Position numbers and translations under genes: made by a program. Below, piece after piece: positions 10,107-56,067 of a stretch of 64,000 nt of DNA. Under the pieces are notes generated by a model. It did no database searches. It worked only from the letters and a program-made list of their open reading frames with translations, and had not been told where the DNA came from. The stretch comes from Selaginella moellendorffii (Eukaryota > Plantae > Lycopodiophyta), in contig NW_003314324.1 in the NCBI RefSeq assembly GCF_000143415.4, forward strand, positions 472,011 to 536,010, given 5' to 3'. How positions within the stretch are numbered: the first letter of the stretch is position 1; every line of letters begins with the position of its first letter.

Positions 10107-10819
10107 AGGGATAGTGGTTGGAAGTATGTCCGACCACTTAAGACATTAATTTGCCTCCCAATGGGCTGTGTCACTCTTTGTTCTACGTTTAGCTTGGGTC
10201 TAAGCCCAAGCTCCACACTGCTCTAGTCAGTGGGGTACCCTCATCCTCGCGTTAGGCCACCAGGATGCCAAAATTATGCCAGACTCTATCTGATGCCATT
10301 TTGCATGCAGGTGCTAGATACAGGAAGTTGGTGCTCGTGGGATTGTACTGGACCCTTATTTTGTAGCACAATAGCCTTGGACTTTGGCTCCAAATTCATG
10401 TGTTCTACAAGAAGGAAGTAATGGTGAGACAAAAGTAATAGAAGTAGAGGTAGAAGCAAAGGAACATATGGCAACAAATTGAGCAATAAAAGATAAACTT
10501 GAATTTATATCAACTAACACAAAGAGAATAATAGGAGACTTCTTGTTATAAAATTGAGTTTGGAAAGTAAACACTGAATAAACTAGTTCCGAATGAACCC
10601 CTTAATAATACTCCTGAAAGAAAAATGAAGGGGTCACCAACTTATTTGCATAAGGTCCCTCCGTTACTCACGTGACTCCTCATTTCCCAGATGCATCTTG
10701 GTGTTTAGACCTTTCACATTGAGTTTAGAAAGTAAACACTAGATAATCTAGTGCCAAATGAACTTCTTAATGATACTCCTGAAAGAAAAATGAAGGGGTC
10801 ACAACTTATTTACACAAGG

Positions 10820-11527
10820 TGTAGTGCACCCTATCTCTCTCTCCTTAAACCAACTGGAAAAGGGGCAATTGTTTGATGAAAGAGCCTTTAATGGCTATTT
10901 TATCCCTATTTATCCCCCAAGGTTCTAAGGATCCATATTGACAATATATCTAAATCTCATCCTATGATCACATGCGCTACACTCACCTCCCCTTCAAAAA
11001 TGTTAATATCTTCATTGACTATTGACTAACAACCCCTACAAAAGATGTTAATGTCTTCATTGACTATTAACTAATAACCCCTATTGAGCCAAGGGGAACT
11101 AACACCTTCATTTCCGCATTGAATCTATTAATCCTTCCATTGTGTTGACTAGCTATTCCATGTGAGACAACTAGTCATCCACCCGTACCGCAGTCCCACG
11201 GTGGATACCTTCGTTCATGGATACTCCACACAAAAGGAAGGACGTATGTATGGATGCCCAATACGTATGATTTCAAATTTAGGGGTAGGAATATACCTTG
11301 CTCAAGGGTATATTATAATTTTAAGTAGCCACTAATTAATGGGAATCGAACCCATACAATTTGCTCCGATACCAACTGTAACACACTTTATCTCTCTCCC
11401 CTTAAGCCAACTGAAAAAAGGGCAATTGCTTGATGAGAGAGTGTTTAGTGGCTATTTTATCCCTAAGGTTCCAAGGATCTACGGTGACAGTATATCCAAA
11501 TCTCATCCCATGATCACATGTGTTACA
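10820..11527 (-). mobile_element. TRIM, family B; LTRs 10820-10981 and 11377-11527
   Basis: ~155-bp TGTA..TACA direct repeats. Perfect TSD CAAGG (10815-10819, 11528-11532). Minus-strand PBS TGGTATCGGAGC at 11363-11374 and PPT at 10982-10994. Confidence 0.92.
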
Positions 11528-11589
11528 CAAGGTCCCTCCATTACTTATGTGACTCTTCATTTCCCAGAGGCATCTTGGTGTTCAGCCCT

Positions 11590-12090
11590 TTCACTACAGT
11601 AGCACCAATAGGATGTCCTTTCACTACAGTAGCAGTAGCACCAATAGGATGTCCTTTCACTACAGTAGCCATAGCACCAATAGGATGTCCTTTCACTACA
11701 GTAGCTGTAGCACCAATAGGATGTCCTTTTACTATAGTAGCACCAATAGGATTTTACTACAATAGCACTAATAGGATGTTGTTGACACCAAGGTCTTCAC
11801 CCCAGGAAATGGAAGCTGCCAATCTGGAAAATATTTCCTCACCCTTGTCTTATTGGAAAATGGATCTTACACTCCCCTGTAAGCTGAATATTCACTACAG
11901 TAGCTGTAGCACCAATAGGATGTCCTTTTACTATAGTAGCACCAATAGGATTTTACTACAATAGCACTAATAGGATGTTGTTGACACCAAGGTCTTCACC
12001 CCAGGAAATGGAAGCTGCCAATCTGGAAAATATTTCCTCACCCTTGTCTTATTGGAAAATGGATCTTACACTCCCCTGTAAGCTGAATAT
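11590..12090. repeat. 30-36-bp minisatellite (tagcaccaataggatgtcctttcactacag) plus a 199-bp tandem duplication (11693-11891 / 11892-12090)
   Basis: Directly visible repeats. Confidence 0.9.
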
Positions 12091-12431
12091 GCCACACATC
12101 CCTACCTGCCAGTCCATGCCTACCATAGGCCATCCAACCATAGCTCCAATACTCCCTACCTGCCAGTCCACGCCTACCATGTAAGCTGAATATGCCACAC
12201 ATCCCTACCTGCCAGTCCATGCCTACCACAGGCCATCCAACCATAGCTCCAATACTCCCTACCTGCCAGTCCACGCCTACCACAGGCCATCCAACCATAG
12301 CTCCAATATCATGTTGAAAAATGGATCTGGATAGGCCAAGGATTGAACCCAAGACCTCCTACACCGGTGCCAAGTGCTCTACCACTGAGCTATCTACCCT
12401 AGTTGTGTGCATATTCAGTTTAGTTCTAACA
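12050..12431 (-). mobile_element. Miniature LTR element (TRIM) with a tRNA-derived LTR
   Basis: Minus strand: 120-bp TGTTAG..TCAACA LTR (12431-12312), abutting PBS TGATATTGGAGC, short duplicated interior, PPT AGGGGAG (12077-12071), then a 21-bp deleted LTR remnant TGTAAGATCCATTTTCCAATA. Confidence 0.7.
12328..12399 (-). pseudogene. tRNA-like (pseudo-tRNA, Cys-like 5' half) Pol III unit inside the LTR
   Basis: GGGTAGA TA GCTC AGTGGTA GAGC A CTTGG CACCGGT GTAGG AGGTC TTGGG TTCAATC CTTGG CCTATCC A. A and B boxes, cloverleaf spacing, upstream CAA, downstream T5. Anticodon loop lacks U33. Confidence 0.8.
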
Positions 12432-13455
12432 CTGAAGTTGAAGCTCCCAATGCAACAAGGGCTTGTTGGTGGTGGTGAGCATTTGCAGCGATTGTTGGTG
12501 GCGAAATGATTTCCCAAAGTTCTTCCATCTACAACATGTGCATCATTTTCTTGGACCAGGTGTTGAACCCTCTCCTCCCATCAAAGGCAATGACTCCCTA
12601 AAGCAAGATCAATCCAACTTTGCAGCAGCTCGACAACAACTTGATCCTGGGGAACAAGCTATCTTGGAGAAGAAGGAATCTCGAGCAAAAGGATTGATTC
12701 TTTCTAAGCTTGCAGATGCCCTTATGATGTGTTTGTGTGATAAGAGTGCTTGTGAGATCTAGGCTCATCTTCACAACAAGTATGCTGTTCTTTCCCTCTC
12801 CAAGATCAGCATGGTCGAGACTTACATTCATAAGACCCATTTTCATCCAAGCAAGAACTTTGAAGAGTTCCTCGCCAAGATGCAAGATCTGTGGATGGAG
12901 CTTGAAGGCAGTCCAGCGGCGTTCAACGAAAGAAAGAAAGTTCTGGCGCTTTGCGAGGCCATGCAAGATTCTTCTTTTAGTTCTTTTGTCCCTACCATTC
13001 ACATGATGTTGCTAACCTTTGAACAAGCTGAGCAAACTTTAAGCTCGGAGCTGGCTGCGAGAGGTTTGATTGTGGACTTTGATCAGAGGCCTTCCCATGT
13101 TTTGATCTCATAGTCTACATCAAATGTTTCTGCATCAAGCAATCAGTTAGGGACTGATTCAGCTCTGTGGGCTGAAAATCATCAAGGCAGAGGAGGCTGT
13201 GGAAGAGGAGGACGAGGTAGAGGTCGCAGGTTTAGGGGAAATCTGCAACAGCAGCAGAATTCAAGGAATTCTGGTAAAGAAGTAGCAGTTTGAGATTGTT
13301 TTGTGGGCAAGAACAAACAGGAATGCAGGACCTATGGGATGCCAGGACACTACTCCAAGGATTGCCCAGTTGTAGCTTGGCTGTAGCACATGAACATAGG
13401 GCTCGTGGCAAATGCTCAGGAAGGGGAAACACAAGAACTTGCGGCATCATCTGAG

Positions 13456-16400
13456 TGTGAGACACAAAATCCCTAGGCCCCAAAGTGGAGCCGGAAGGGC
13501 GCCACATGGTAGTGGCCGAAGCGAGAGCCAAACGAGCGTAACACGTTTGGACCAAAAGCTCCGACTTGAAAAGTCAAGAGCGGGAGTGGAACTCCCAACG
13601 AAGTGCTCGAGGAACGAGCACGAAGCGAGCAAAAGGCGAGGCTCCAAAAAGGGACCCAAAAGGACCAACACATGACACGTGGGAGTGTCCGAGATGGACT
13701 CGAGTTGGAGTCCAAAGTGGAGTCCGAGATGGACCCGAGTTGGAGTCCAAAGTGGAGTCCGAGATGGACTCGAGTTGGAGTCCGAAGTGGAGTCCGAGAT
13801 GGACCCGAGTTGGAGTCCAAAGTGGAGTCCGAGATGGACCCGAGTTGGAGTCCGAAGTAGAGTCCGAGATGGACCCGAGATGGAGTCTGAGATGGAGTCC
13901 GAAGTGGAGTCCGAGATGGACCCGAGATGGAGTCCGAGATGGAGTCCGAGATGGACCCGAGATGGAGTCCGAGATGGACCCGAGATGGACCCGAGATGGA
14001 GTCCGAGATGGAGTCCGAGATGGAGTCCGAGATGGAGTCCGAAGTTGAGACCGAGACCGGGACCGAGACCGAGACCGGGACCGAGACCGAGACCGAGACC
14101 GAGATCGGGACCGAGACCGAGGCCGAGGCCGAGACCGAGCCCGAGCCCGAGTCCGAGTCCGAGTCCGAGTTCGAGTCCGAGTCCGAGTCCGAGTCTGAGT
14201 CCGAGTCCGGAGCCTGAGAGGGTGAAAGCCCAAAGCGTTCGTCTCCCAGACCCTGGGGGGTTTGGTGAGCTCCAAAAGTATAGTAGGGGGAGGACTGCAG
14301 TGGAGCCAGTTTGGCCAGGAAAGGCCAGTTTGGCCCAGGAAGGCCAGACCCAGTGTTGGGTGATGAACTGACCACTGGGAAGTCCAAGACTAGAGTGAAT
14401 ACGAACCGACAAGCGGGGTAGCTTGGTGAAGTGTTCAAGAGCCGGCTCTAGTTCCCCCGGGAGATCGACTGGCCGATGCTCCCAGTCCAAGTGTGGGTGG
14501 CACTACCTACTTGGGTACCTGGTGTGGCTCAACGGAACCCGCTCTAAGCCCATGGCTAGAGCACCCAAGGGTAGAAGGCGAGGAGAGTACCCAGGTGGCT
14601 CGCGTAAGGCCACGGTGTTCCGAAATGTTGTCCCAAAGGCCCAGACTGTGGAAAGGAAGAGGAGCAGTCCTCTGGGGTAGTGACCAAGGACGCAGTCACA
14701 CAGTGAGGAAGTCCTAGAGGATAGTGGGACTTAGTGGTCGGGCCGGTGGGCCTCGATCCAGTGGCAGTGTTGGCGAACACAGCCAAGGACAGAAAGGGAC
14801 TTGGTGGGGACTGGAACAGAGATATTGGGGAAGGCTATTCCCCATGTCTGTAGGCATCCTAAGGATGTCAAGGAGTGGATCTGGGATGATCACTCATGGA
14901 TGGATGACCCAGTCTTTGAGAGACGGGATTGGAATGTAGGTGGTGTTGGACCACCAGTGTGACCGAGGTAAATGGGCATGGCCTTAGCGTAACGGGCCGA
15001 TATGTCGGTGGTACCTTGGGGTGTCGATCATGGGATCGGACACGTGGAGCACTTGGACCAAGTGCTAAGGTTGAGTGGCATGGATGCCATTCTCGGGGCT
15101 AGCAAGCCCCAAGTCCTGAGTTGGGCTTATGGAGGTTGTGAATGAGACTCCTCCAAGTGGTCGGAGGTGTGGTTAAGTGACTAAAGTAGAATGGAAAAAT
15201 TAGTCGCTTACAACTTGGTATCGGAGTTGTTCCTTAGTCCGACTTTTATTGGTGCTCAAGTATATCACCACTAGTGTTGGCATCGGAAGGTCTGAGGAGT
15301 GGGCCTATCCTTGAGGAGTAGCAAGTCGGGAAGACATGGCTCTCCATTACAGTTCATGTGTGAACTTGTAGACGAGGTGGTGGATAGAAAAGGGCCAATA
15401 ATGGAACGACTTTGGGATCTTGGGAACAGTATATGGTTTTCCTCAAAGAGTTGAGGATGTGATCCAGATGAGTGTTTGACTTAGCAAACTGGCTAATGTA
15501 GTTGTAGTAAACAACTACAGTTGGGATCACGGGAAAGATAAAGACTCCAAAGCAATAAAGGAGTCACAAGATTTTCCTCATATAGTTGAGGTTGGTGCTC
15601 ATGAATGTGAGACCAGAAGTAATGACCGTGGGAGGCCAAATACGGAAGAGGACTCAAGTCCTTGAAAAGGTAGCCGGGGCTACCTCTAATAAATGCTGGA
15701 ACAACCCCAGGAGTTGGGGGTGTATTAGGTGGATGAGTTGGTGTTCTCATCACATGGACAAGTAGTCCTAAGGGGCAAAGGTTGCCCCCAGAGAACAAAA
15801 TCAAGTGTCGGAGTAACACTTGTGAAAATAGTCCTTTTGAGTAGGACAGGAATGCAAGAAATGTATTCCAGTGAGCTAGTGCCTCACAAGGAGGACCTTA
15901 CGGGTCTGTGGATTAACCAAGTCCAAAACTGTTGGATGACTCAAGTAGAGTCAACGGATGGTCCTAAAAGGACTGATGGAAGCATTTGGACTGAGGTGTG
16001 TTGTACCCCACAAAGGATGGGGGGGGATCATAGGATCCAAGGATGAGAACAGAGGGTATCTCATCGATGGCAATGTGCCATGCTAAAGTTATGGGAAAGG
16101 TGTTCCCAGAAGAAAACAACTTTGACATAAAGTTGTGTGTGACCTCTATGGGGCAGTGCTAACAGATGGTTGGCATGAGAAAGAGCGGTGTTGGTCTTGG
16201 CAAAGACTTAGACACGAAGGGAAATGTCATAGAGGTAGGCTCGTGGAGCCGATGGTGTGGAGACACCAAATGTGCCAAGGTGTGATACCTTGAGGCTATG
16301 TTGGTGGGTTCATGAGAACCCCTTGCTAAAGGAATCCCAATGGAAATGGGAATGGCATAGCCTAAGCTGCAAAGCATGCAGTTGGAGTGTGGTGACCCAG

Positions 16401-19400
16401 ATAGTGATGGAGGTGTGAAAGCACCAAGCAATGAGTTGTAGGACTTGACAACTATGAGGCAACTAAGCAAGAGGTGCAAAATAACTGATTAAACGGGTAG
16501 AAGGTAGCTACCCAAGACTTCTAGTATAGGGAAGTCGGATATACCCTTACGGGGGATAAGTTGCTTGTGTTGCGATATAGTAAGTCAATGTCATAAACGG
16601 AAATACTCATTGTCAAGAAAGCCATCATTGGGACACCCGAACACTCTAGAACACCAGAAGGTGGTGTTTGATGTCACGAGGGCAATGGATAAAGCCCAAG
16701 GGACTAAGTCCCTAGCGAATGATGGATAGAAGGTGCTATCCAAATGTCCAAGGTTGCGGAGACAGAAGAGAACTGTCTACCCGAGTTGGACAAAGCCAAA
16801 AATGGAATTTTGGCAAGGCTAGTGATGGGCATGTAAAGGCCCATAAGCAACAATGTAATCCCAGTGTGTGGGATTATAAGGTGAGCATACCCGGATTGAG
16901 GAACCACTCCCTAGGCTATTGGGTAGGTTCATCCCTAAGAATACTTGCTAAAGCATGATAGAAAGTGCGAAGCTATCCTCCTGGTCTGAAGGAGAATGAC
17001 CAAAGGAAAGGTGTGAAGCCAAAAAGCAAGAAGTAAGGGGAGAGAACCGAACCGTAGGAATCAAAGGGCATAACCAAGGTTGGTTATGCCAGCTGGGAGT
17101 GGAGAATCAAGTGGGGACTCGAGGGTGTTGCCGCTAGCAACCGTGATGCCATGGAGAGTCTAAAATATGGAATTGTCCATGTTAGACTATGTGGCATTTG
17201 GAAGGCTTGCAAAAAGGGAGGCCGTAGCAAGCTGAGGGACAGAGTTCCTTCAAGGTTCCCAAAGACGATTCTAGGTAGCTTAGTACCTAGAAAGGCCAAG
17301 TGTAAATGGTTCATGGAACGCGCGAAATCAGAGTGGCGCAGCAGAAGCGTGGTCTTGAAGCTTGCCATGAGGCAAGGCTATCAAAGTTAGGGAAGTAGTT
17401 CCCGAGTGTTCAAAGAGAGGGCTTTGAATGAAAGTCGATGGTCAAGGACTGTCACGCTTATGCAGGAACCATGTTACAGTGGTCGGAGGACTTGCCAAGC
17501 AAGATTGGCACGTCAGGGGAACAAATACCCTAGTTGAAGGTGATAACTTCAAAAAGGGTGGGCCATGGGGCCGAGCATGGAGGAGTCCATGCATGATCAC
17601 AGACATGTCAAGTGAGAGGACTTGGCAGTGTGGAGGAACTAGGTTCCTAAGCTGTGATCTGTAGCGCACTTTAAAAATAAGTTGGTGCACCGGCATGGGG
17701 AGTCACGCCAGGCATCTTGTGTGATGCCATCCGTAGATGCATATACGGAGGTTGGGTTCGAGTCCCGACCCTCTAGTGCTTGGGTTCGAGTCCCAAATCA
17801 TTAGGGCGTGGTGATGGTTTGGAATATGAGGACACTCATATTTCGGTGGTCATGGACTCTCAGTGGGGAGACTGGTTTGGGCACACCGCCAAGCGAGGGA
17901 TGCCTCGGAGTCGTGATGCACGGTTAGATTGCTTAGTGTGAAAGCTCAGCATATCTAACTTGAACACTTTGGTGCAAGTGGCACCAAGGTCGTGGTGAGT
18001 GAGATGGGGACACCTAATCTCAGTTGCTATGAACCCTTGGCCGTAAGGGCTAGCTTGGGTGCACCGCCAAGTGTGGGGGATGCCCCCGGGGTTATAGTCA
18101 ACAACTTGGAGGTCTAGAAAACCAAGTACCTCTTGGCAACTCTGTTAAGGTGCCAAGGTGAGATCACTAGGTGATCTTATGGCCAGATAAGGACAAGGTC
18201 CTTGGTTGGCTAAGGAATGAAGTTCCTGGTTCAAAATGTTGAAATTAAACTGTTTAAGGTGGTGTGGCTTGGTCGTGATAACCAAGTGGGAAGAGCACCT
18301 AAGGGAAATAAACTATGTCCGTGCGATGGCATAGTGAGTCCGAGGAAAGTAGTCTCTATAAAAGACCCATGGGAGGGTCACGAAGTTGGGCCGTGGATAG
18401 AGCCTATAGCAGAAGATGCTAAAGAGACGTACTAGGGGTGAACATCCTCCGGACTTGGCAAAGAAGAGTCTTTGCTATGGAACCGAAACAATACCTCAAG
18501 GAGGGAGGTAGAGATTCGATGTTGCTTGGTGCAACAATCAACGGATAGGAGCAAAAGATGAGTGGCCAAGATAGGGCCGTGGAATCCCTTGGAAGGAATC
18601 CAAGTGACAAAGTTAGGCGAGGAACACTAATGTGTTGGATGCTAACAAGTTGCGGGAAAGGAAGTGTGTTTCCAAGGAGGGATTCCGAAATGCTCCGATT
18701 TGGCGAAAGTGGAAGCTCCAAGGGAGGGAGCGGTAAGGTAGCCAAATGATAGGGCCATGAACAGCCCTAGCACAAAGTATGATAACTAGAACTTTGGCAC
18801 GAAATAGAAGAGAGGATGATGGTGCCCTCGAGTAGAGAACTTCCTAGGATGGGAAGTGGAGTTGCACAAAAGGTGCAAGGCAAGGTGTCGGAGACATCTA
18901 GGAAATTGACTCCAAGAAGTCAAAATTCAAAGTTCCAAAGTGCAAAGGTTATATCGATGGAAATTGAGACTACTCGAGAAGGAGTAGTGGGATTGACTTA
19001 GAGAAGGGTCTCTAAGAGGTTTAGCGAGAACTAAACCAATAAAAGGAGAGAACCACTATATGTGGTCCAATCAGTCTCTAAGTTGGAGAGACTACCCTCC
19101 TTAGAGGATATGCAAAAGGCATGGTGAGCCTTCAATGTCCAACCATTGACGAATATGGAGAAGGCATGGTGAGCCTTCAATGTCACACCATTGACAAATA
19201 TTGGCTATGCGCCAAGGATGGAAATGGTAACACATGCGGGTGTTACTTTATAAAATGGTTCACCGTTCGATGAGGACATCGAACTTCGTCTATGGGTGGT
19301 GGAGTTGTGAGACACAAAATCCCTAGGCTCCAAAGTGGAGCCGGAAGGGCGCCACATGGTAGTGGCCGAAGCGAGAGCCAAACGAGCGTAACACGTTTGG

Positions 19401-21092
19401 ACCAAAAGCTCCGACTTGAAAAGTCAAGAGCGGGAGTGGAACTCCCAACGAAGTGCTCGAGGAACGAGCACGAAGCGAGCAAAAGGCGAGGCTCCAAAAA
19501 GGGACCCAAAAGGACCAACACATGACACGTGGGAGTGTCCGAGATGGACTCGAGTTGGAGTCCGAAGTGGAGTCCGAGATGGACCCGAGTTGGAGTCCAA
19601 AGTGGAGTCCGAGATGGACTCGAGTTGGAGTCCGAAGTGGAGTCCGAGATGGACCCGAGTTGGAGTCCAAAGTGGAGTCCGAGATGGACCCGAGTTGGAG
19701 TCCGAAGTAGAGTCCGAGATGGACCCGAGATGGAGTCCGAGATGGAGTCCGAAGTGGAGTCCGAGATGGACCCGAGATGGAGTCCGAGATGGAGTCCAAG
19801 ATGGGACCCGAGATGGACCCGAGATGGAGTCCGAGATGGACCCGAGATGGACCCGAGATGGAGTCTAAGATGGAGTACGAGATGGAGTCCAAGATGGAGT
19901 CCGAAGTCGAGACCGAGACCGGGACCGAGACCGAGACCGGGACCGAGACCGAGACCGAGACCGAGATCGGGACCGAGACCGAGACCGAGGCCGAGGCCGA
20001 GACCGAGCCCGAGCCCGAGTCCGAGTCCGAATCCGAGTCTGAGTCCGAGTCCGAGTCCGAGTCCGAGTCCGAGTCTGAGTCCGAGTCCGGAGCCTGAGAG
20101 GGTGAAAGCCCAAAGCGTTCGTCTCCCAGACCCTGGGGGGTTTGGTGAGCTCCAAAAGTATAGTAGGGGGAGGACTGCAGTGGAGCCAGTTTGGCCAGGA
20201 AAGGCCAGTTTGGCCCAGGAAGGCCAGACCCAGTGTTGGGTGATGAACTGACCACTGGGAAGTCCAAGACTAGAGTGAATACGAACCGACAAGCGGGGTA
20301 GCTTGGTGAAGTGTTCAAGAGCCGACTCTAGTTCCCCCGGGAAATCGACTGGCCGATGCTCCCAGTCCAAGTGTGGGTGGCACTACCTACTTGGGTACCT
20401 GGTGTGGCTCAACGGAACCCGCTCTAAGCCCATGGCTAGAGCACCCAAGGGCAGAAGGCGAGGAGAGTACCCAGGTGGCTCGCGTAAGGCCACGGTGTTC
20501 CGAAATGTTGTCCCAAAGGCCCAGACTGTGGAAAGGAAGAGGAGCAGTCCTCTGGGGTAGTGACCAAGGACACAGTCACATAGTGAGGAAGTCCTAGAGG
20601 ATAGTGGGACTTAGTGGTCGGGCCGGTGGGCCTCGATCCAGTGGCAGTGTTGGCGAACACAGCCAAGGACAGAAAGGGACTTGGTGGGGACTGGAATAGA
20701 GATATTGGGGAAGGCTATTCCCCATGTCTATAGGCATCCTAAGGATGTCAAGGAGTGGATCTGGGATGATCACTCATGGATGGACGACCCAGTCTTTGAG
20801 AGACGGGATTGGAATGTAGGTGGTGTTGGACCACCAGTGTGACCGAGGTAAATGGGCATGGCCTTAGCGTAACGGGCCGATATGTCGGTGGTACCTTGGG
20901 GTGTCGATCATGGGATCGGACACGTGGAGCACTTGGACCAAGTGCTAAGGTTGAGTGGCATGGATGCCATTCTCGGGGCTAGCAAGCCCCAAGTCCTGAG
21001 TTGGGCTTATGGAGGTTGTGAATGAGACTCCTCCAAGTGGTCGGAGGTGTGGTTAAGTGACTAAAGTAGAATGGAAAAATTAGTCGCTTACA
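13456..21092 (+). mobile_element. Young non-autonomous LTR retrotransposon (LARD-like), family C; LTRs 13456-15212 and 19306-21092
   Basis: Near-identical ~1.77-kb TGTGAG..CTTACA LTRs. Perfect TSD CTGAG (13451-13455, 21093-21097). PBS TGGTATCGGAG at 15216-15226. No long ORF in the 4.1-kb interior. Confidence 0.95.
13687..14210. repeat. 12-mer/6-mer satellite (ccgagatggagt, ccgaga, ccgagt) in the 5' LTR; copy at 19537-20090
   Basis: Directly visible. It explains the low-complexity ORFs in all frames. Confidence 0.95.
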
Positions 21093-30532: not shown

Positions 30533-31248
30533 CCCTACTCAATCATGTTTGGGTCGGACAAATGTGGCACCACCAACAAGGTGCACTTCATCTACAAGTA
30601 CAAGGGCCCCAAATCCGATAAGCACATCAAGCATCACCTCAAGTACCCGCCATCGCCAATGGCTGACAAGCTCTTTCACATCTACACAGCAGTGATCTAC
30701 CCGAACAACACACTCAAGATCCTCATCGATGGCAAGGAGGAGAAGAGCATTGACCTCCTCTCGAGCAACTTCAAGCTGGCCGTGATCCGGCCCAAGAGCA
30801 TCTGCGATCCCGACAACAAGAAGCCCGACTGCATCGTCCAAATCTCAATCCCTATCACCAAGATCGGCTCTAGATCCAGCCTGTCTAACTCGAAGTACTC
30901 CGGGTTCGGTATTTGCTTCAGAGCCCAGATCCCCTTGTAAGCCGAGCTGTCAATCATCGGAGGATACCACTTCCCCTTGTAGTCCAGGTTCCTCTACATG
31001 GGCCTCTTCCATTCTCCACACCCAGACGCTTCCTCACACTTTGGGTTGCTGATCTTCGGGGGTCCTCCTTGTCGTCCCAGTCCGCGGGCTTGCTAGCTTC
31101 TAGATCGTCAACCTCGTCTGGCTCGTTGTCCAGCCAGTCATTGGGCTTGACCACCTCTGAGTCCTCGATCTCCAGTGGAGCGTCCCGTCCCAATCCCCGG
31201 GCTTGGTAGCTTTTGGATCAGGGATCTTCTCCGGCTCGTCCCAGTCTT
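30533..31248. pseudogene. Calnexin gene fragment, internally inverted
   Basis: 30533-30827 is the sense copy of the calnexin exon at ~43424-43720. 30828-31248 matches ~42991-43427 in the opposite orientation. Confidence 0.92.
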
Positions 31249-32746
31249 GGGATTTTGATAACCATTAGATTGGTTTCAATTAAAATCATTTTCTTCTGTA
31301 TATAAACTATTGGTTAATTGATATGCACATTTTTATATTTCATTTCCATATTTCATGCACTCACATTTGTGAAGGAGAGAAGTAATTTTCATTGTCTTTA
31401 AAGGTGTCTGGATTTAGGATATTAGTTTAGATCTACCTTTTGTATCATCTAGATCTCTCTTTTCTTCTAACTTTTTCAATTTTTTCTCTTTTCCTTTTTC
31501 CTTTTTGTTTATCTTTATGGTAAAGTAGCAACTTCCTCCTCCTTTGGTTGATGTAATTGCTCAATGCTATATGGTTATAATTAAACAATCAAACTTAGTT
31601 AATAGTGGCATTTACGTCGCATGATACAGCTCTTCTTGCTTTTACTGTCAATCCTTGCGTTTAGCCAGAGTTCTTCTATAGGAGTTCTAGAGATGATATA
31701 TATTATTAGTTTGATCATTTTATGGTAATTGCCACAAATAATTCTTGGGATGATGCTTAGCATCTGCATGAGTTTCCCACGTGTCTCCAAGAAATGGCAC
31801 TATAGTGGTAAAATTGTTTGAGTGTAGCCACTCATGCATTCTTCCAGATGTCTTCAAATGTACATTTTGACATACCAATGATTGTGATAATACCTTCCAA
31901 CAATTGCATTGTCTTTGTCAAGGGCCATTTGAGTTGTTATTGCCAACATTTCGTCAAAATCTTGTAGTACTTATCATATTTGATAATGCTCTTCTCTCGA
32001 CAGTTACGAGACATCACCTTTTCCACTTCTCGCTACACATCATTTAGCTCCACTTTCTATAAAAGATGGTTCTATTCCAATGGAGGTTGATGCTATTACT
32101 GCTCGAGTTTAAGAACGAAGGTGAGAATGTAGTCATGGCCATGATATCCACTGTTGGATGTGTGATGAAATTGGTCACACCTATCGGTCTTGTCAATGTT
32201 TTCCGGATTAGCGACCTCTATTTTTTGGGTGGATACTTTGGCTTCAATAATGTCCTATTGCTACTACTATAGTAGAAGGTTTGAACACCTTGATGCTTAT
32301 GAGAAATGAGGAGTTGCACAAGTAGCAAAGGGTCCTTGCACAAATAAGTCAATAACCTCTTCATCTTTCTTTTGAGAGTAATATTAAGAGGTTCACTTAA
32401 TACTAGTTCATTCAATATTTACTTTCTAAGCTTGTTTTTATAACAAGAAGTCTTCTATTATTCTCTCCTTAATGGTTGATATAGGCTTGAATTTATCCTT
32501 TATTGCTTGGTCTGTTTTCGCACATTGCTGACTATATTTGCGTTGTAAAGCAAAGCCAAATTTCATTCTTTATAGTAACAGTTGTACATATAAATGTGCA
32601 CGGGATCAAGCAGACCTAGTTGTGAATATGGGCAATCTCGAGTTTGAGCTACAGTTATTGCAGATGGTGCTAAGTTAAACTTTTGACTTCATCTTTGGTA
32701 TAGATTGGTTATAACATAATCATGTTAAGTGTCACTTTGAGGCTTC

Positions 32747-35884: not shown

Positions 35885-36466
35885 TGTAAGCTTTTGAGTT
35901 TGGACTTCCTGGGAGGTTATTTAGCCCAATACTATTCAAACCCAAAGATGTTTAACCCTAAATATCCTAAGACTCTTAACAAATTGGAAAAGGGGTGCAT
36001 TTTTATTCATGGGCCCTTTCCCTCTATATTTGAACTGACTGTTTCTCGAGATATTCTTTTTGGTCGATTACAATTCACTATGCTTCCTTACAAGTTTATA
36101 CCCTCGTGAATGGAAGTTAAGAGCTACAACTCTCCTAAGAGCCTCACTTTTTTGACATTCTACCCCTCGGGTCAAGCTCAGCCAAAAGCAAATTAGACCT
36201 ACCAAATGTTAATCTCAATATATGGTATGATTCCCTAAGCCAACTAACAAAGTTAAACTTAAGACCTACTCCAATACAAAATATGAGCTTTTGAGTTTGG
36301 ATTTCCTAGGAAGTCACCCAATCCAATACTATTCAAACCCAAGAACATTTAACCCTAAGTATCCCAACACCTTTAACTAAGGGTGCACTCTTATTCATTG
36401 GCCATTTCCCTCTATATTTAAACCCTTATGGATTATTTCTTAAGTTGTTCTCCTTGATTGCTTACA
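35885..36466 (-). mobile_element. TRIM, family D; LTRs 35885-36072 and 36282-36466
   Basis: ~186-bp direct repeats ending TTACA. Near-TSD CTTTA/CTTAA. PBS-like ctccaatacaa. Interrupts the host pol at the LKL|..YDFDV junction. Confidence 0.7.
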
Positions 36467-39489: not shown

Positions 39490-41183
39490 ATGAACAGAAA
39501 CTCTAGCATTCATTTTATTCAATCCTGCAAAAGCCTTTATGAAGCAAGAGAGATTTACCTGAATCTTAAAAGGAATCATCCACTTGCTGACTCAGCAACA
39601 AGCTCATGGAGATGTTTGGCAAATATAGAAGCCCACAAGAGGCACGCCAAATCTTTGATACCATCAAACACAAAGACTCCTTTTCACGGGCTTTCACATT
39701 ACGAGCTTATGCCCAAAACTCCCATCTTAAACATGCAAAAGAGATCTTTGACAAAATGCCGCAAAAGGATGTCCTTGCATGGACATCCATGCTCTTGGCA
39801 TATGCCCGGAGTGGGCATGTTCTCAATGCCCAAAAAACATTTGATGAGATGCCGCAACACAGCCTTGGAATTCTCATGGAATGCCATCCTGTCAGTCCAC
39901 GCACACAGCTGGGATCTAAAATATGCTGAAAGGATTATCTTCGGGATGCCCGAGTGTGATCTCGTGTCTTGGAATTCCATTCTTGCGGCATACGCCCAGA
40001 ACGGGCATGTAGAGGGAGCGAAACGTGTTTTCGATTCTATGGAGGCTCGTGACCTTGTGTCATGGACGACAATCTTGGTTGCCTTGTCGCAGGGCGGAGA
40101 TTTGCACGGAGCAAAACTTTTGTTTGATGCAATGCCGCAGCACGACCTCGTCGCCTGGACCGCGGTTCTTGGCGTGTACGCACTGAACGAGGATGTCGAT
40201 TCGGCACAGAGGATTTTCCGCGAGATGCCTGAGATAGATCTCGTTTCGTGCAACACCGTGATGCGATGCTGCCGTGATGCTAGACCATCAAAGCTTATAT
40301 TTGACTCCATGCCACAGAGAGCTCTCTCGTCGTGGACAACAATGCTCGCTGTTCTTGCCAAGAACAGCCCCGGGGAGGAAACCAAGAGCTTTTTCTATCA
40401 AATGCCGGAGCTTGATCTTACTTCCTGTACGATAATGTTGCTCTCACAACCCTCAGACTTGGAGCTTGTGAAGGCCACCTTTGATCAAATGCCGCAGCGA
40501 GACCTGTGCTCTTGGAACTCTGTTCTTTCGGCGTATGCCCAATCAGGGCATTGTGACTTTGCTTTAAGACTCTTTAACGAGATGCCCGAAATGGATATGG
40601 TTTCGTGGAACACAATGTTAAATGCGTTTTTTCTGCATTTTCCCGAGAAGGCCATATTGTATACGCAAGGAAACTTTTTGATTCAGCCCCTGACAGAGAC
40701 CAAATCTTGTGGAGCTCCATGATAGCTTCATATGCACAAGTAAGCACCACTGCCAGCAAGGCCTTTCATCTCTTCAACGAAATGCAGGCCGTCGATTCCC
40801 CAAACACATCGTGCTTCGCATCCATCCTGGCCGCAAACAGCCACAAAGGCAGCTTTCAAGCGGGAAAGAGCTTCTTCGCTTCCATGGTTGTGGATCACGC
40901 CATTGAGCCCACAAGGCAGCACTCCAGTTGCATGGTAGATCTCTTGAGCCGAGCCGGCCACCTTCACGACGCCAAAGATCTAATCTTAAGCATGCCGTTC
41001 GTTCCCAGTGCTCTCGAGTGGACGTGCCTTCGCGGAGCATGCAAGAGCCACGAGGATTATAACAATCTTAGACTGGGAGACGATGTAGTGAGGTCTGTAA
41101 TGGACGTAACCGACGCAACCCCCACTGCTTTACTAGCAAACGTCTACACAAGCTCCCAAACAAAAAATCCACACTATATGTGA
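39490..41183 (+). pseudogene. PLS-class PPR (E-type) with two frameshifts
   Basis: PPR motifs are distributed over ORFs 39606-39929, 39490-40722 and 40605-41183 (HSSCMVDLLSRAG..MPFVP). Confidence 0.8.
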
Positions 41184-42303: not shown

Positions 42304-44217
42304 TTACGATTCGCGTCGGGTTCTCCTTTGGCGGGCGCCCTCGCCTTCCTTCTCAATCTCGTTGCCTGTCGCGTCGTCCTCCGCCTTGTCCTTGGAATCG
42401 TCCGGGCTGGAGATGTCTTCCTTCTTGGACTTCTCTACGGTCACCTGCGCAAGACAAACAACCGTGACAATCCAAAACTCGCGCAACGCTATTGATAATT
42501 GTACCTTCGTCTTCTTTGGGGGCGATTTCTTGCCACCAAATAGAATCTTAAACAGCGTGACCACCACGACGAGCGGGATCAAAGCTATGGCGCTCAAAGA
42601 AATGGTTGGGAACTTCTCGGCCTTCTCCAGAAGATCCTGTGTGTCACAAACGAAAAGAAAGTTAGAACACGAGACAAAGCCCATGCTCGCGTGTTTTACT
42701 TACAAGAATCTTTTCCTTCTGTGACGCCAAAGCCGGGATGTCGGCAACCTTGCGCAGGTACTCAAACATCTTTGCCTGAAAAGATTCAAGGTCGTCACAC
42801 ACAAAGAAAAAAAAACGACAAAAGACAGACAAAGGAAAAGTACCTGGATGCCGTCAGGACTCGGAGTCGCTTCTTCAATCTTTTGCTTCTCCTTCTCAGC
42901 CTCGTACTTGGGCTTCCATTTCGTCTCCCTGTACTCTGCTGCCACAGCCTCGTCGGTCGCCACCAGGATGTTGTCAAAAAGAATGCCGTCCTGCATCGTC
43001 CAGATCTCGATCCCTATCGCCGAGATCGGCTCTAGATCCGGCCTGTCCAACTCGAAGTACTCCGGGTTCGGTATTTGCTTCGGAGCCCAGATCCCCTTGT
43101 AAGCCGGGTTGTCGATCATCGGAGGATACCACTTCCCCTTGTAGTCCGGGTTCCTCTTCATGGGCCTCTTCCATTCTCCACACCCAGACGCTTCCTCACA
43201 CTTTGGGTTGCTGATCTTCGGGGGCTCCCACTCGCCATCCTCCTCGTCGTCCCAGTCCGCGGGCTTGCTAGCTTCCGGATCGTCAACCTCGTCCGGCTCG
43301 TTGTCCAGCCAGTCATCGGGCTTGACCGCCTCCACGTCCTCGATCTCCAGTGGAGCGTCCTCGTCCCAATCCTCGGGCTTGGTCGCTTCCGGATCGGGGA
43401 TCTTCGCCCGCTCGTCCCAGTCCTCGGGCTTCTTGTCGTCGGGATCGGGGATGGTCTTGGGCGGGATCACGGCCGGCTCGAAGTCGCTCGAGAGGAGGTC
43501 GACGCTCTTCTCCTCCTTGCCGTCGACGAGGATCTTGAGCGTGTTGTTCGGGTAGATCACTGCCGTGTAGACGTGAGAGAGCTTGTCAGCCACTGGCGAT
43601 GGCGGGTACTTGAGGTGATGCTCGATGTGCTTGTCGGATTTGGGGCCCTTGTGCTTGTAGATGAAGTGGACCTTGTTGGTGGCGCCGCATTTGTCCGGCC
43701 CAAACATGATCGAGTAGGGCGACTCGTTGCTGAAATCGCCGGGCGTCCATCCAGCCTCTTGCGGGAGGAGGAACTTGAGATAGGCGCCGCCACACTCCAA
43801 CCCCTTCTGGAGCCGGACATCGTACTGGAGAACCACGACGTCGTCCTTGAGATCTACCGATTTGGGCAGAGTAGCCGCGATTCCGTGCTTCTTGGCCGGC
43901 TCGCTCACAAGAAGGCCGTAATCCTCGTGACCCTCGCTCTTCTCGTGCTTCCAGTGGCCTGCCAAGAAAATCGGCGCCGATGAGAATTTCTAGCCACGGA
44001 ATTTCGCGATCAAGAACAGACCTTGATAATCGCTGTGGCCAGAAACGGTCCATCGACTCTCCCAAGAACCATCGAAAGGCTCGTAGAACACCTACATTCG
44101 ATCGATCGATCCAATCCAGACCTAGAAAGAAAAAGAATCAAGCGCGCTTACCACATCGGCAGCTACCGCGGCGGCCCCAATCGCCAGCAATCCGAGGAAC
44201 AGCAGCGCCTTGGCCAT
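42304..44217 (-). CDS. CNX1: Calnexin (multi-exon)
   Basis: Signal peptide MAKALLFLGLL, ECGGAYLK, IMFGPDKCG, P-domain KPEDWD repeats, TM helix, C-terminal RRRTRRES. Confidence 0.97.
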
Positions 44218-44525: not shown

Positions 44526-47294
44526 CTATAGGGACATGATCTCCAGAGCGTCCCTTGTTCTTCCCATAATGTCTAGAGCGGTCGCAGCAATGTGAGCTGC
44601 TGTTAATCCAGCCTCGGTCATTTGATCGTTTGGAGAACCATGGTCGATGTATCGATCGGGAAGAACCAATGGTCGCCACTGCAATCGATCGAAAGAGAGA
44701 GTGATATGAGCACAAACTTTACGTCCAAAAGAAAGAACTTGAAAAATTTGCCTTCAAAGTTCCGTCGAGAAGTCCATCCAGAGCCATGAACTGTGCTACG
44801 TGAGAGCCAAATCCTCCGATTGATCCTTCCTCCACCGTGATAAGTACCTCGTGTTCTCTCGCAAGCTGCCGGATCAAGTCGCGGTCCAGTGGCTTGCAAA
44901 ACCTCGCGTCTGCGACCGTGGCCGGGAGTCCACAGCTCGCTAGAAGAGCTTGAGCGGCGAGACACGACTGTACCATCGTTCCATAGCCCAGCAGCGCGAC
45001 TTTAGATCCTTCGACTAGAATCCTCCCCTTGCCAACCTGTGTGAGGAGTATAGCTTTGAAAATGGAAAACAAAAAACTCGACAGGTTTCTTACCTCGAGA
45101 GGTATGCCTTTGTTTCCTGGTGGAAGCACCACCCCGATACCATTTCCTCTGGGATAACGAAAGCAGCTTGGACGATCATCAATAGCAGCGGCGGTGGCGA
45201 CCATATGGAAAAGTTCGGCTTCGTCCGACGGCGCCATGACCACCATGTTTGGCAGGCAAGCCATGTAAGTTACGTCAAATGCTCCACAATGTGTCGGACC
45301 GTCGGCTCCAACTAGACCCGCTCTGTCCATGGCAAATCTCACGGGTAGCTTTTGGAGATCAACGTCGTGAACAACCTGAGACAAAGCCGCATCATAAACA
45401 AGAAAACATCTGTGGCAAGAAAGAGCTCCTACCTGGTCGTAAGCTCGCTGGAGAAAGGATGAATAGATAGCACAGAATGGCTTTAGGCCTTCGCAGGCAA
45501 GCCCCGCAGCGAAAGTCACGGCATGCTGCTCGGCAATACCGACGTCGAAACATCTATCTGGGAAACGTTTCTGGAACATATTGAGGCCCGTTCCTCCACC
45601 CATAGCCGCGTGTATGGCAATGATCCCATTGTCGACTTCAGCTTCGGCAATCAGGGCCTCTGCAAAGTACGTGGTATAAGCTTGCGTTGCAGTCTTTCCT
45701 TTGAATTGCTTCCCAGTTGCCGGATCGAATTTAACAACACCTGATCAGAAACAAGGAGAGTGTCAAACTCAAGTATTTTGGAGGAGATTCACTTTCCATG
45801 GTACTTGTCTGATGCACGCTCGGCATATGGATAGCCACGACCCTTCTCCGTGACAATGTGAATCAATACCGGACCCGTCGTTCGCGTGTTTTTCACCTCC
45901 TTGAGAATTGTAACAAGGTCTTCGATGCTGTGGCCATCTACAGGTCCAATGTAGTAAAGTCCCAGCTCCTCGAAAAGAGTAGACCCCGATCCACTTATCA
46001 TTCCACGCGCATACTCGTCGACCTTTGCTGCGAGTTCATGCATTGGTCCTCCAAGTTGTTTAGTCACTCCCTGTAATATATATACGAACGTTACTTGTGT
46101 ATGCATTACTAGACGTTAGTACCTTAGCAACTTCACGAAGTTCACGAAGAGGTCTGCTTGACTGTAATTTGCTGAGAGCGCTGCTCAAAGCTCCCACCGG
46201 TGGGGCTGGACCGTCCAAAGTCGCCGTTGGCAGAGAAACTTGCTTGTTATCATTTAGAATAACGATCATATTCGAGTCCAAGTAACCAGCGTTGTTCATG
46301 GCCTCGTAAGCTTGACCCGCCGTCATTGCCCCGTCACCGATCACGGATATCACATGATTCTTGTTTCCCATCAAATCTCGGGCCACAGCCATGCCTGTGA
46401 CATCAAAGTTTTGTCAATCGATCAATATCGAACTACGTGATTGAAGAGAGGTTGCCTACCTAAGCCAGCGGATATACTGGTGGAGCTGTGCCCGGCACCA
46501 AAGGAGTCATACTCGCTCTCTGATCGTTTTGTAAATCCAGAAAGTCCATTAGTCTGCCGCAGGGTGTGCATTCTCGATCTTCTTCCTGTAAGAATTTTGT
46601 GAGGATAGGCCTACGACCAACACAGGATTAGCGTGACTTTTTTTTCACAGTGAAGCTTGCGGGAGTCGAACTACCTGATGGCCGACGTCCCAAAGAATCT
46701 TATCTTCTGGCATGTTGAAAACATGGTGAAGAGCAACAGTGAGCTCAATCACTCCAAGACTCGCTCCAAGATGCCCGCCGGTCTTCGAAACAGTGAAGAT
46801 GATGTCCGATCGAAGCTCATCTGCCAATTGTCGCAAATCCTGCAAACAAGAGGAATATTGTTTTGTAGTTTTCTAGCATTTGTCATCTCCATACCTTGGT
46901 GCTAAGATTTTTCATATGCAAAGGGTAGTTGACAGTGTCGAGCAAAGGCGTGGGAGGCTTCTCCGCGAAATACTCTCCTCCGGGCCCCGTCGACGCTGCT
47001 GCTGATGCTGCCACAGCCAAAAACCTCCGAGCCTACACATCCATCACAAGTAAGAGTTGACCTTGGAGCCGGCCAGAATTTGGCCTGCATTGCTCGCGGC
47101 GAGGAGATCCTGTCGAAATTTCGATCACGTACCTTGACAGAAGCGGGCTTGACGCCCCTGCGCTGGAGATTTGTGTGAGCTTGAGGCAGTAGGTATCCGG
47201 ATTCCGTCGGCCGGGCCACAAGGCGGCTGCTGTTGGCGCTGCTCGTGCTACATTCCGCTCCTCCTAGCGCCATAGCTGCTGCTGAGGGTGCCAT
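44526..47294 (-). CDS. DXS: 1-deoxy-D-xylulose-5-phosphate synthase (multi-exon, plastid transit peptide)
   Basis: [19 protein letters not shown] motif [48 protein letters not shown]. Confidence 0.98.
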
Positions 47295-47519: not shown

Positions 47520-47593
47520 GCTGGAGTAGCTCAGTTGGTCAGAGCGTGTGGCTGTTAACCACAAGGTCGGAGGTTCGAGCCCTCCTTCTAGCG
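47520..47593 (+). tRNA. trnN-GUU: tRNA-Asn(GTT)
   Basis: GCTGGAG..TTCTAGC acceptor stem, anticodon arm TGTGG CTGTTAA CCACA, GGTTCGAGCC, upstream CAA, downstream TTTT. Confidence 0.97.
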
Positions 47594-47679: not shown

Positions 47680-49740
47680 ATGCTTTGCAATGCTCGTTTC
47701 CTCGTGGTGCGCCCACCTCCGGCCTGCGGGGAGCGCCATCAGTTCCAGGAGTGGGACGATGAGCTCGATCCATCGGTCTACGCACAGCTCGTCAAAGCTT
47801 GCGGCAATGCCAGGGATCTCCAAGGCGGAAGGCGCATTCACGAAGAGATTCTCCACAATGGCCGCTGCTCCACCGATCGCTACCTCGCCAATCTGCTCGT
47901 GGAGATGTATGGAAAGTGTGGCAGCGGCGAGAACGCTCGCAGGGTTTTCGAGAGCATTCGCCAGCCCAACCAGTTCTCGTGGAATCTGATAGTGGCGGCC
48001 CTGGCCAGGAGCGGGAATGTGAGAGACGCGAGGGCCATGTTTGATCGGATGCCCGTCCGCGATGCTGTTTCGTGGGGGACAATGATCACTGCCTACGCCG
48101 ACAGTGGCGACGTCTTGGAAGCTAGAAATCTCTTCGCCAAGATGCCGGATCCAAATGCCTGGGCTTGGTCCGCAATGATCTCAGCATATGCCCAAAACGG
48201 GCATCTGGTTGAAGCAAGAAAGTGTTTCGATTCTATGCCCGAGCCAGAAGCTGTATCGTGGAACACAATGATCCATGCCTACAATCAGCACGGGGAATTC
48301 AATCAGGCTAGAAAGTTGTTTGAGAGAATGGAAATCAAGAACTCGGTTTCGTGGAACACGATGATCACTGCTTACGCCCAGAATGGGTATATCTACGACG
48401 CGAGGATCTTGTTTGAGAGGATGCCTGGGAAGGAGGTCTCGTCCTGGAACGCGATGCTTGCAGCGTACGCGCAGATCTTTTACACGAACGAAGTGAAGGA
48501 TTTGTTCGATCGAATGCCGCACAGAAATTTGATCTCGTGGAACACTCTGATCGGAGCGTATGCTGATAGAGGTGACTTTGAGGCTGCAAAGGTGGTGTTT
48601 GAAAGCGCGGCTGTGAGGGACGTTGTCTCGTGGACCGCGATCCTCAAAGCTTTTGTTCACACGAGAGAGGTTGAGCAAGCAAAAGAGCTCTTTGATCGAA
48701 TGCCCGAGAAGAACCTCGTTTCCTACACGACCATGCTTGTGATCTTTGCGAAGAATAGCTGCCTGGATCGAGCAAAGGGGCTGTTTGATCGAATGCCGCA
48801 GTACGATTCTATCTCCTGGGGGGCGATGATCGAGGCGTACTCTGAGAATGGATTTGTGGCAGTCGCGAGAGAGATGCTCGATCGAATGCCTCACCAGGAC
48901 GTTCTAGCTGTCAACATCGTGATTGCGGCTTATGTGCACGCTGGGCATATGGAGGAGGCCAAGAGCTTATTCGACCTTATGAAAGAACGAGACTCTACCA
49001 CTTTAAACGCTATGGTTTATGGATATGCCCAGCTCGGGCATATAGATCTTTCACGGCATCTTTTTGATTCTCACCCGGACAAAGACACCACCTCCTGGAA
49101 CACGATGCTGGCGGCTTGCTGTAGGTGCTGGCTTTTCGAGGAGATGGTGGAGACCTTCTGGAGGATTCCGGAAAGGAATGTGGTGTCGTGGACGGTGGCG
49201 ATACAGTCCCACGTCTTGAGAAACCAGCTGAGGCTTGCAAAGGCGGTTTTTGAGAGGATGCCCGAGCAGGACGTAGTGTCGTGGAATGCTTTGCTCCATG
49301 CTTTTGCTCGAGAAGAAAACGGGAACTTCTCCATGAATCTCTTTCGGGAGATGGTCGTGGAGGGATTCAAGCCGGACGAGACGACGCTGCTGGGAGTTTT
49401 GGTGTCGTGCAACCACGATGGCCTCCTCGAGAGAACCAAGTCGAGCTTCTCGAGCTTTAGATCCGACTTTGGCCTCGACTGCCCCAGGCAAGAGCTCTTC
49501 GACTGTCTGCTCGACAACTTTGGACGATCCGGACAGCTCCGAGAGGCCGAGGATCTCCTCCGGTGGATGCCGTTCTCTCCCAGCGTCGCGTCCAGCACCT
49601 CGTTCCTGCGCGCATGCAAAGTTCACGGAGATCCAGAGCGAGCAGCCAGATTCTCGCAGCACTTGAGCGACTTGAAAGGAGGACAAGCTCACGGTTCTTA
49701 CGTCCTTCTCTCGGACAGCTTGAAAACCATGACGACGTAG
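47680..49740 (+). CDS. PLS-class PPR protein (E-type, no DYW)
   Basis: Intronless 686 aa, tandem 31-aa repeats, E-like C-terminus. Confidence 0.93.
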   Translation: MLCNARFLVVRPPPACGERHQFQEWDDELDPSVYAQLVKACGNARDLQGGRRIHEEILHNGRCSTDRYLANLLVEMYGKCGSGENARRVFESIRQPNQFSWNLIVAALARSGNVRDARAMFDRMPVRDAVSWGTMITAYADSGDVLEARNLFAKMPDPNAWAWSAMISAYAQNGHLVEARKCFDSMPEPEAVSWNTMIHAYNQHGEFNQARKLFERMEIKNSVSWNTMITAYAQNGYIYDARILFERMPGKEVSSWNAMLAAYAQIFYTNEVKDLFDRMPHRNLISWNTLIGAYADRGDFEAAKVVFESAAVRDVVSWTAILKAFVHTREVEQAKELFDRMPEKNLVSYTTMLVIFAKNSCLDRAKGLFDRMPQYDSISWGAMIEAYSENGFVAVAREMLDRMPHQDVLAVNIVIAAYVHAGHMEEAKSLFDLMKERDSTTLNAMVYGYAQLGHIDLSRHLFDSHPDKDTTSWNTMLAACCRCWLFEEMVETFWRIPERNVVSWTVAIQSHVLRNQLRLAKAVFERMPEQDVVSWNALLHAFAREENGNFSMNLFREMVVEGFKPDETTLLGVLVSCNHDGLLERTKSSFSSFRSDFGLDCPRQELFDCLLDNFGRSGQLREAEDLLRWMPFSPSVASSTSFLRACKVHGDPERAARFSQHLSDLKGGQAHGSYVLLSDSLKTMTT

Positions 49741-53763: not shown

Positions 53764-53840
53764 GGCATCATGAAACTCCGCAAACTTCCATGTATTTACA
53801 AACTTAGCACAAAAACTATAAAAAAAACCCAAACCGTTTG

Positions 53841-55198
53841 CTAGATGCAAGCTCCAGCGCAGTTTACCAGGTCTCGCAGATGGCTCGACGCCAGATCTTC
53901 GTTCCCCTGCGAAAAAGAAGAATTTTTCATGAGCCTGGACCGAGTTTATCATTGACATACCTCCCAGTCGATCGCATGAAGGTTCAACTCATACGTTACC
54001 CTTCCAGCAGACGCCTCCATCTCCGCGCGATTGGCGACCATAAACTTCCACTGCGTTTCCTTGCCTCGAATTATGGTCACTCTGCGATGCTCGACGTTGC
54101 AAACGCTGAAGCGCTTTGCAAAGGAGTCGCGACCCAGTGGCCAACGCAAACCGCCCTTGACAGTGTCGTCTACAACAGCAGCGCTGGCCAGTGCTTCATA
54201 GGCAGCTCTCTCCTCGTCCTGTTTCTAGGAAAACTTAGCTCTCGATCAACAGCAAAGGAAGACTTAACTGGAACGTCGGTAAGCAGCGTCTCAGAGTAGA
54301 CTGCGATACGCAAGTCCGTTTTGCGTCCTACGCACAGATAATCAGACACAAGATGCCTTAATGGATCAAGCTTGAGCTGCTCAGGTTTCAATGATTATCA
54401 CCCAGAAATCTGGCGAAAGAGCAATACCTTCTTCAAGACTAGAGAATGCTCGCTTTCATGAGCTCGCTCGCACACACACCTGACAAGGTAACGAGGACGA
54501 TCAATGTCCTTCACCTGTGAGCAAGCGATCAAGCGCAAGCAAGTCTATGGAAAGTAGTTACCTTGAAGTGGTAGCGTTCGCAAGTGGTGACTTCCACAGC
54601 CTCTTGTTGTAGAGCAAGGTGCTCAAACTGGTGGAAAAGTTCTGGCGCTATTGCTGTGTGGAAGGTCCTCCTAAGCCTTGAGGATTCCTCCTCAAGATAT
54701 CCTGGACTGAAGCTTTGGACCTGTTGGGTATCTTTTCGGAACACAATCGTTCCAAGTCGCAAAACCATCTTGAGCTTGCCTCGTGAATCGTGCACGCTCG
54801 AAGCTGCAAGCGACCCTGCCCTGCCTCGCGTCGCTGTCATAACATCCAGAGAGAGGGACTCTATTCCAATGTTCTCAGCCAGAGATCCATTGGTGTTTCC
54901 TGGCACCAAAACAGAACTTTGAGTGAGCTATCAAATGATATTCTTCGATCGTACCTGGATGATCGCCGTCGTCCACAACAGTGACAATGTACTGCTGCTT
55001 ACCATCCAGATGAGCGTAGGTCTCCCCTTGAAAAACCTGGAATTCGAGGCGCGCCTCGCCGGAGAGGACATGAAACTGTAAAATGCAGCTAGCAGCTTCC
55101 CTGATCACCGGAAATGGAACGGTGATCCTCCGCCCGCCCAGCGCCTGGGGCGATCGCTTGGCCTCCCCGAGGCGCCTGTGAGGAGGAACGTAAGGCAT
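53841..55198 (-). CDS. Conserved plant protein of unknown function (MPYVPPHRR start; multi-exon)
   Basis: N-terminal YxPPHxR motif. Spliceable exons (RLGTIVF, RHLVSD..DLRI). Last exon GNEDLASSHL..CI*. Confidence 0.7.
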
Positions 55199-56013: not shown

Positions 56014-56067
56014 CTATGGATTGGCACGATACTTTATGCTGACGTGACGATTTCGCGACCGTCCGAT

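Follow-up and report, generated by a model that had tools for sequence, protein, structure and literature searches.

The grouping TRIMp3 comprises Helenus, Ajax and Cassandra (PMC10886601). In Cassandra the LTR contains a 5S rRNA sequence whose transcription by RNA polymerase III (Pol III) has been shown (Kalendar et al. 2008, via PMC10886601 and PMC7215508), with the transcripts extending from within the 5S portion of the 5' LTR to within that of the 3' LTR and having a terminal redundancy of 18 bp (PMC10886601). Helenus is defined as those TRIMs that bear a tRNA-derived sequence inside the LTR, and its sole plant family is Helenus-1_SMo of Selaginella moellendorffii, with an LTR of 120 bp, an interior of 85 bp, a total length of 325 bp and a 5-bp target-site duplication (TSD) (Kojima 2024, Biology 13:119, PMC10886601; Repbase). 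According to the same paper, Helenus insertion yields 5-bp TSDs, the elements are taken to be mobilised in trans by autonomous LTR elements, and their transcription by Pol III is expected but unproven for every Helenus; their origin is proposed to lie in the insertion of a SINE2 into the LTR of a TRIM (PMC10886601). In the sections of that paper used here, neither the type of primer-binding site (PBS) nor the helper element of the plant family is discussed.

We analysed a stretch of 64,000 nucleotides from S. moellendorffii (contig NW_003314324.1, positions 472,011 to 536,010; hereafter the window, in whose numbering all positions are given) and found that the minus strand of 12050-12431 is almost certainly an old, mutated and rearranged copy of Helenus-1_SMo, a miniature retrotransposon of the TRIMp3 grouping with a tRNA-bearing LTR. 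The family consensus was taken from the supplement of PMC10886601, identities were counted by eye in a side-by-side reading without an aligner, and assignment to the family was made at an identity of at least 80% to the consensus across LTR and interior. By this count the LTR is identical at 109/120 positions (about 91%) and the interior, once its internal duplications are collapsed, at 78/85 (92%), with the same order of parts and the same TG..CA ends. The copy and the published family have in common the species, the 120-nt tRNA-bearing LTR, the type of PBS, the interior, the position of the polypurine tract (PPT) and the TG..CA ends, whereas the copy departs from the family in an interior expanded from 84 to 241 nt, a 3' LTR of 21 nt, the lack of a TSD and transitions at about 9% of positions. 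At 382 nt in total it is short (<1 kb) and without coding capacity, the only open reading frame across it (12038-12352, 104 aa, TTG start) being a read-through of the duplicated interior. A preliminary description of this locus had listed a series of structural elements on the minus strand of 12050-12431, every one of which we recovered in the sequence. From a 120-bp tRNA-derived LTR with an iMet-type PBS behind it, ~85 nt of interior, a PPT and a 3' LTR cut short, it pieced together a TRIM of ~325 bp, and these are the dimensions published for Helenus-1_SMo (120/85/325 bp). Its further reading of the element as the tRNA counterpart of Cassandra is right but not new, such elements having already been published as Helenus/TRIMp3 in February 2024, with S. 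moellendorffii one of the source species.

The likeness to Cassandra lies in the architecture of a gene-less LTR retrotransposon with a Pol III promoter of small-RNA-gene origin in each LTR. Unlike Cassandra, in which this promoter is the type 1 promoter of 5S rRNA, the present copy carries a tRNA-derived unit with predicted type 2 A and B boxes. The Rfam scan of 11000-13500 by E-value returned only the tRNA match and none to 5S rRNA, and membership in Cassandra was rejected because the LTR contains no 5S rRNA-derived sequence. Elsewhere in the window a weak 5S rRNA match is seen on the minus strand at 36285-36372 (23.6 bits, below the gathering score of 38; E = 0.044).

The complete 5' LTR of 120 nt (TGTTAG...TCAACA) occupies 12312-12431 on the minus strand, and its 11 differences from the consensus, as counted by eye, are all transitions (8 C>T and 3 G>A). 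It opens with an AT-rich leader of 32 nt (12400-12431, minus strand; 31% G+C), in which a CAA (12405-12403, minus strand) stands 4-6 nt upstream of a tRNA-like unit of 72 nt at 12328-12399 on the minus strand. This unit scores 31.3 bits with the Rfam tRNA model RF00005, for which the gathering score is 29, and does so whether the scan is local or covers the whole window. The features by which a Helenus LTR is recognized, a tRNA-like sequence with a box A (TRGCY..YGG) and a box B (GGTTC), are both found intact, the A box being TAGCTCAGTGG (12382-12392, minus strand) and the B box GGTTCAATCC (12340-12349, minus strand), each unchanged relative to the consensus. In shuffles of the window neither half of the tRNA-like unit found a match (0 for each), and the structural elements of the copy are not a product of chance.

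A score just over the tRNA cut-off, together with the tRNA-Arg(CCG) call and cloverleaf drawn by ARAGORN at a relaxed threshold, might suggest instead a cellular tRNA gene or pseudogene (tRNA-Arg-CCG) that by chance lies beside repeats. The probability of this is vanishingly small. The sole other match in the whole-window Rfam tRNA scan, a real tRNA-Asn, reaches 68.3 bits, and ARAGORN at its default setting makes no call at 12399-12328. In the cloverleaf drawn at the relaxed threshold the acceptor and D arms are good, but one acceptor pair is broken; the T stem consists of 4 G-U pairs and 1 G-C pair, and the anticodon position reads CCG with an A at position 33 in place of U33. Furthermore, the 32 nt before and the 16 nt after the unit also match the Helenus LTR consensus, and on the strength of these flanks and of the defective cloverleaf a functional tRNA gene was rejected. 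The predicted RNA fold of the unit is no better than that of its shuffles (z -0.62), which lends no thermodynamic support to a cloverleaf in the decayed copy. The tRNA-Asn(GTT) gene, on which Rfam and ARAGORN agree, lies on the plus strand at 47520-47593, directly upstream of a PPR (pentatricopeptide-repeat) gene.

Two details of the preliminary description do not hold. It had likened the 5' half of the unit to tRNA-Cys, a parentage that finds no support: the anticodon position is CCG with A33, and the single call obtained is the Arg(CCG) call of ARAGORN under relaxed settings. It had also taken the T5 run near the end of the LTR (12317-12321, minus strand) for a terminator; in the consensus this site reads T4 followed by CC, and the copy has acquired its fifth T through a C>T change.

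The 5' LTR is immediately followed by a tRNA-iMet-type PBS, TGATATTGGAGC (12300-12311, minus strand), which is 2 transitions away from the family consensus TGGTATCGGAGC; the latter is in turn one base off the canonical plant tRNA-iMet PBS, TGGTATCAGAGC. The two other PBS-like 12-mers cited in the preliminary description were located on the minus strand at 11374-11363 and 30264-30253. The interior (12071-12311, minus strand) is 241 nt long and resolves into an original segment of 84 nt and tandem duplications of 54 and 103 nt; in its de-duplicated form, compared by eye, it shows 6 substitutions relative to the consensus, of which 5 are transitions, and has lost a single nucleotide. It ends in a PPT, ACAGGGGAG (12071-12079, minus strand; consensus AGGGGGGAG), directly 5' of the remnant of the 3' LTR, so that the junction reads ...ACAGGGGAG-TG at 12079-12069. 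Helenus-1_SMo is characterized by a PBS that abuts the 5' LTR and a PPT that abuts the 3' LTR, an arrangement that the copy shares. SINEs, by comparison, are without LTRs, PBS or PPT, have A-rich, simple-repeat or LINE-like tails and variable TSDs, and are mobilised by LINE enzymes. What the copy shares with the tRNA-derived SINEs (SINE2) is a head that resembles a tRNA and carries A and B boxes, and this is the one feature that would suggest a tRNA-derived SINE. Such a reading has next to no probability, given that the copy is without an A-rich or simple-repeat tail, the tRNA-bearing unit is bounded by TG..CA, an iMet-type PBS stands immediately after it, a PPT and a repeat of the end of the unit are found downstream, and the whole element matches a published TRIM consensus. 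We ruled it out by the TG..CA borders, the presence of PBS and PPT, and the recurrence of the LTR end.

Of the two directly oriented LTRs that the family has, the 5' one is complete with TG..CA ends, and the 3' one survives after the PPT as a remnant of 21 nt (TGTAAGATCC...CCAATA; 12050-12070, minus strand), in which the first 7 positions of the consensus LTR are joined to its last 14 (107-120) and the whole tRNA-like part is missing. The final 17 nt of this remnant agree with the end of the 120-nt unit at all but 2 positions, and the whole is best read as the outcome of a 99-nt deletion between two AGA triplets accompanied by 2 substitutions. A 19-mer from the published LTR end has 3 matches in the window, against 0.05 expected from shuffles, and these fall at the end of the LTR and at the places of the remnant. 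Its recurrence right after the PPT suggests that a second LTR once stood there. Neither motif searches allowing up to 3 mismatches nor blastn at word size 7 recovered a second full copy of the 120-nt unit in the window, where only the 21-nt remnant and its duplicate were found. As there is one full LTR and no other copy in the window, the status of the 120-nt unit as a putative LTR rests on the published consensus and on this remnant.

The remaining changes are tandem duplications, all seen on the minus strand. The older of the two in the interior, at 12201-12308, has units of 54 nt (12308-12255 and 12254-12201; 2 mismatches) and begins within the PBS (TATTGGAGC); the younger, at 12077-12282, has units of 103 nt (12282-12180 and 12179-12077; 1 mismatch). 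The latter must be the later event because each 103-nt unit holds both variants of the 54-nt repeat. These duplications differ from the LTR-interior-LTR arrays that have been described for Cassandra. A third duplication, at 11693-12090, is perfect, with units of 199 nt (12090-11892 and 11891-11693; 0 mismatches), each of which spans the closing 20 nt of the interior, the remnant of the LTR and a further 158 nt of flank, and it has produced the second PPT and remnant at 11890-11851. The damage would accordingly have begun with the 54-nt and continued with the 103-nt duplication, the 199-nt duplication coming last; this last duplication is either very recent or an artefact of the assembly. Tandem repeats abound in the neighbourhood, their periods being 25, 36, 45 and 165 nt, which makes local instability plausible.

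At the ends of the copy no 5-bp TSD is present, the 5' side reading TTCAG and the 3' side AGACA. The TSD is a mark of an intact insertion and not of descent from a family, and it bears on the history of this copy rather than on its homology. In the present case an exchange of the 3' flank or a recombinant origin of the element may lie behind the lack of a TSD. As an alternative to a simple insertion that decayed in place, two Helenus copies could have been joined into a chimera, or an insertion could have had its 3' flank replaced afterwards, and either would account for the missing TSD. The mismatched flanks and a neighbourhood that rearranges readily, with tandem duplications of periods 25, 36, 45, 165 and 199 nt, speak for such a history, which we regard as possible though on the doubtful side: it has no positive support, just 2/17 positions distinguish the 3' remnant from the end of the 5' LTR, and blastn found no second element in the window.

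Across the LTR and the de-duplicated interior, 16/17 substitutions relative to the consensus are C>T or G>A, and many of the mutated C and G bases of the copy stand in CG or CHG contexts. Deamination in methylated, silenced plant transposons yields changes of this kind. The substitutions thus fit a methylated and silenced copy, and the pattern as a whole is what an old silenced element would be predicted to show. With a divergence of about 9% from the consensus and a single copy in the window, in which shared and private changes are inseparable, some of the 17 differences might also be diagnostic of an older, separate subfamily of Helenus. We consider this decidedly improbable, as nearly all differences are the C>T or G>A changes that private decay predicts and the lengths and boundaries are identical to those of Helenus-1_SMo; under the 80% rule the copy is placed in the same family either way, and its filing is unaffected.

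About 520 bp downstream of the Helenus copy, likewise on the minus strand, lies a complete TRIM with TSDs (10815-11532). Its LTRs (11527-11377 and 10981-10820) are about 84% identical with an 11-nt indel, its PBS is TGGTATCGGAGC at 11374-11363, its PPT is GAAGGGGAGG, and the 5-bp TSD CCTTG is present on both sides. The element proper (10820-11527) resembles Helenus in a 12-nt PBS identical to the Helenus consensus, in the 5-bp TSD, in its miniature size and in its strand. In contrast, its LTRs of 151-165 nt are without a tRNA-like unit, only a B-box-like GGTTCGATTCC being found 13 nt past the PBS, and by blastn neither the LTR nor the interior of Helenus shows similarity to it. Its autonomous helper is probably of the same kind as that of Helenus. 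This TRIM has inserted into a satellite-like repeat whose unit measures about 165 bp (10553-10882 and 11523-11780), a repeat which runs into minisatellites of 36 and 25 bp (CTACTGTAGTGAAAGGACATCCTATTGGTG-type) and of which a diverged copy in opposite orientation, with about 71% identity by blastn, occurs at 32195-32440.

On the other side of the Helenus copy, its 5' flank (12432-13400) contains two plus-strand open reading frames (12463-12762 and 12811-13113), which we considered as a Copia gag and rejected, as neither has a Pfam match even at E = 10. Further along, the segments 13447-14490 and 19243-20370, about 5.8 kb apart, are open in several frames of each strand, translate into low-complexity sequence (GLGLGL / SDSDSD) and are probably simple-sequence arrays. 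The coding complement of the window includes four intron-less PPR open reading frames of 410-770 aa (39490-40722, 47680-49740, 51985-53958 and 56044-58356), one of them with an E motif, as well as a calreticulin (42700-43965) and a transketolase-like (44719-45603) open reading frame, both on the minus strand. The PPR genes are at least in keeping with S. moellendorffii, a species rich in such genes. Calreticulin-like coding fragments are seemingly also present, as judged by eye, at about 30550-31250.

For Helenus-1_SMo the sequence establishes the succession LTR-PBS-interior-PPT-LTR and the presence of A and B boxes of the Pol III type. For an intact element we propose the following replication cycle. 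Pol III would start in the 5' LTR, a few nucleotides upstream of its tRNA-like unit, read past the weak T4 of that LTR and terminate in the T run of its 3' counterpart. Strand transfer would then use as terminal redundancy (R) the tRNA-like stretch, ~85 nt long from start to terminator. Reverse transcriptase and integrase would be supplied in trans by an autonomous LTR element using the same iMet primer, probably a Copia element, to which we infer that the combination of an iMet-type PBS and a 5-bp TSD points. Candidates for this helper were sought by blastn of the Helenus interior against the other elements of the window, to which it shows no similarity.

Judged from its sequence, the copy at 12050-12431 is itself immobile and cannot transpose, because its PBS carries 2 mismatches, its interior has been tripled by slippage-type duplications, its 3' LTR is without the R and promoter part and no TSD is present. 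With the A and B boxes of its 5' LTR intact and a T5 run gained, it could at most give rise to a short tRNA-like Pol III transcript. That the surviving 5' LTR still acts as a free-standing Pol III gene making a tRNA-like RNA of ~85-90 nt and that, separately, the PBS-containing interior is turning into a minisatellite through the 54- and 103-nt duplications are conjectures that we put forward as unlikely; if true, the former would represent a step from a transposon LTR to a small-RNA gene.

Beyond annotation the copy is of little import, being one more damaged member of the only plant Helenus family. At 31.3 bits against a cut-off of 29, an Rfam-based pipeline would label this Helenus LTR a tRNA, a mis-annotation of which Kojima 2024 has warned (PMC10886601). 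The use of Pol III by Helenus and the passage of the polymerase through the T run of the 5' LTR are questions that concern the family rather than this locus, and for that family the iMet-type PBS common to Helenus and the neighbouring TRIM provides a small pointer to the helper element.
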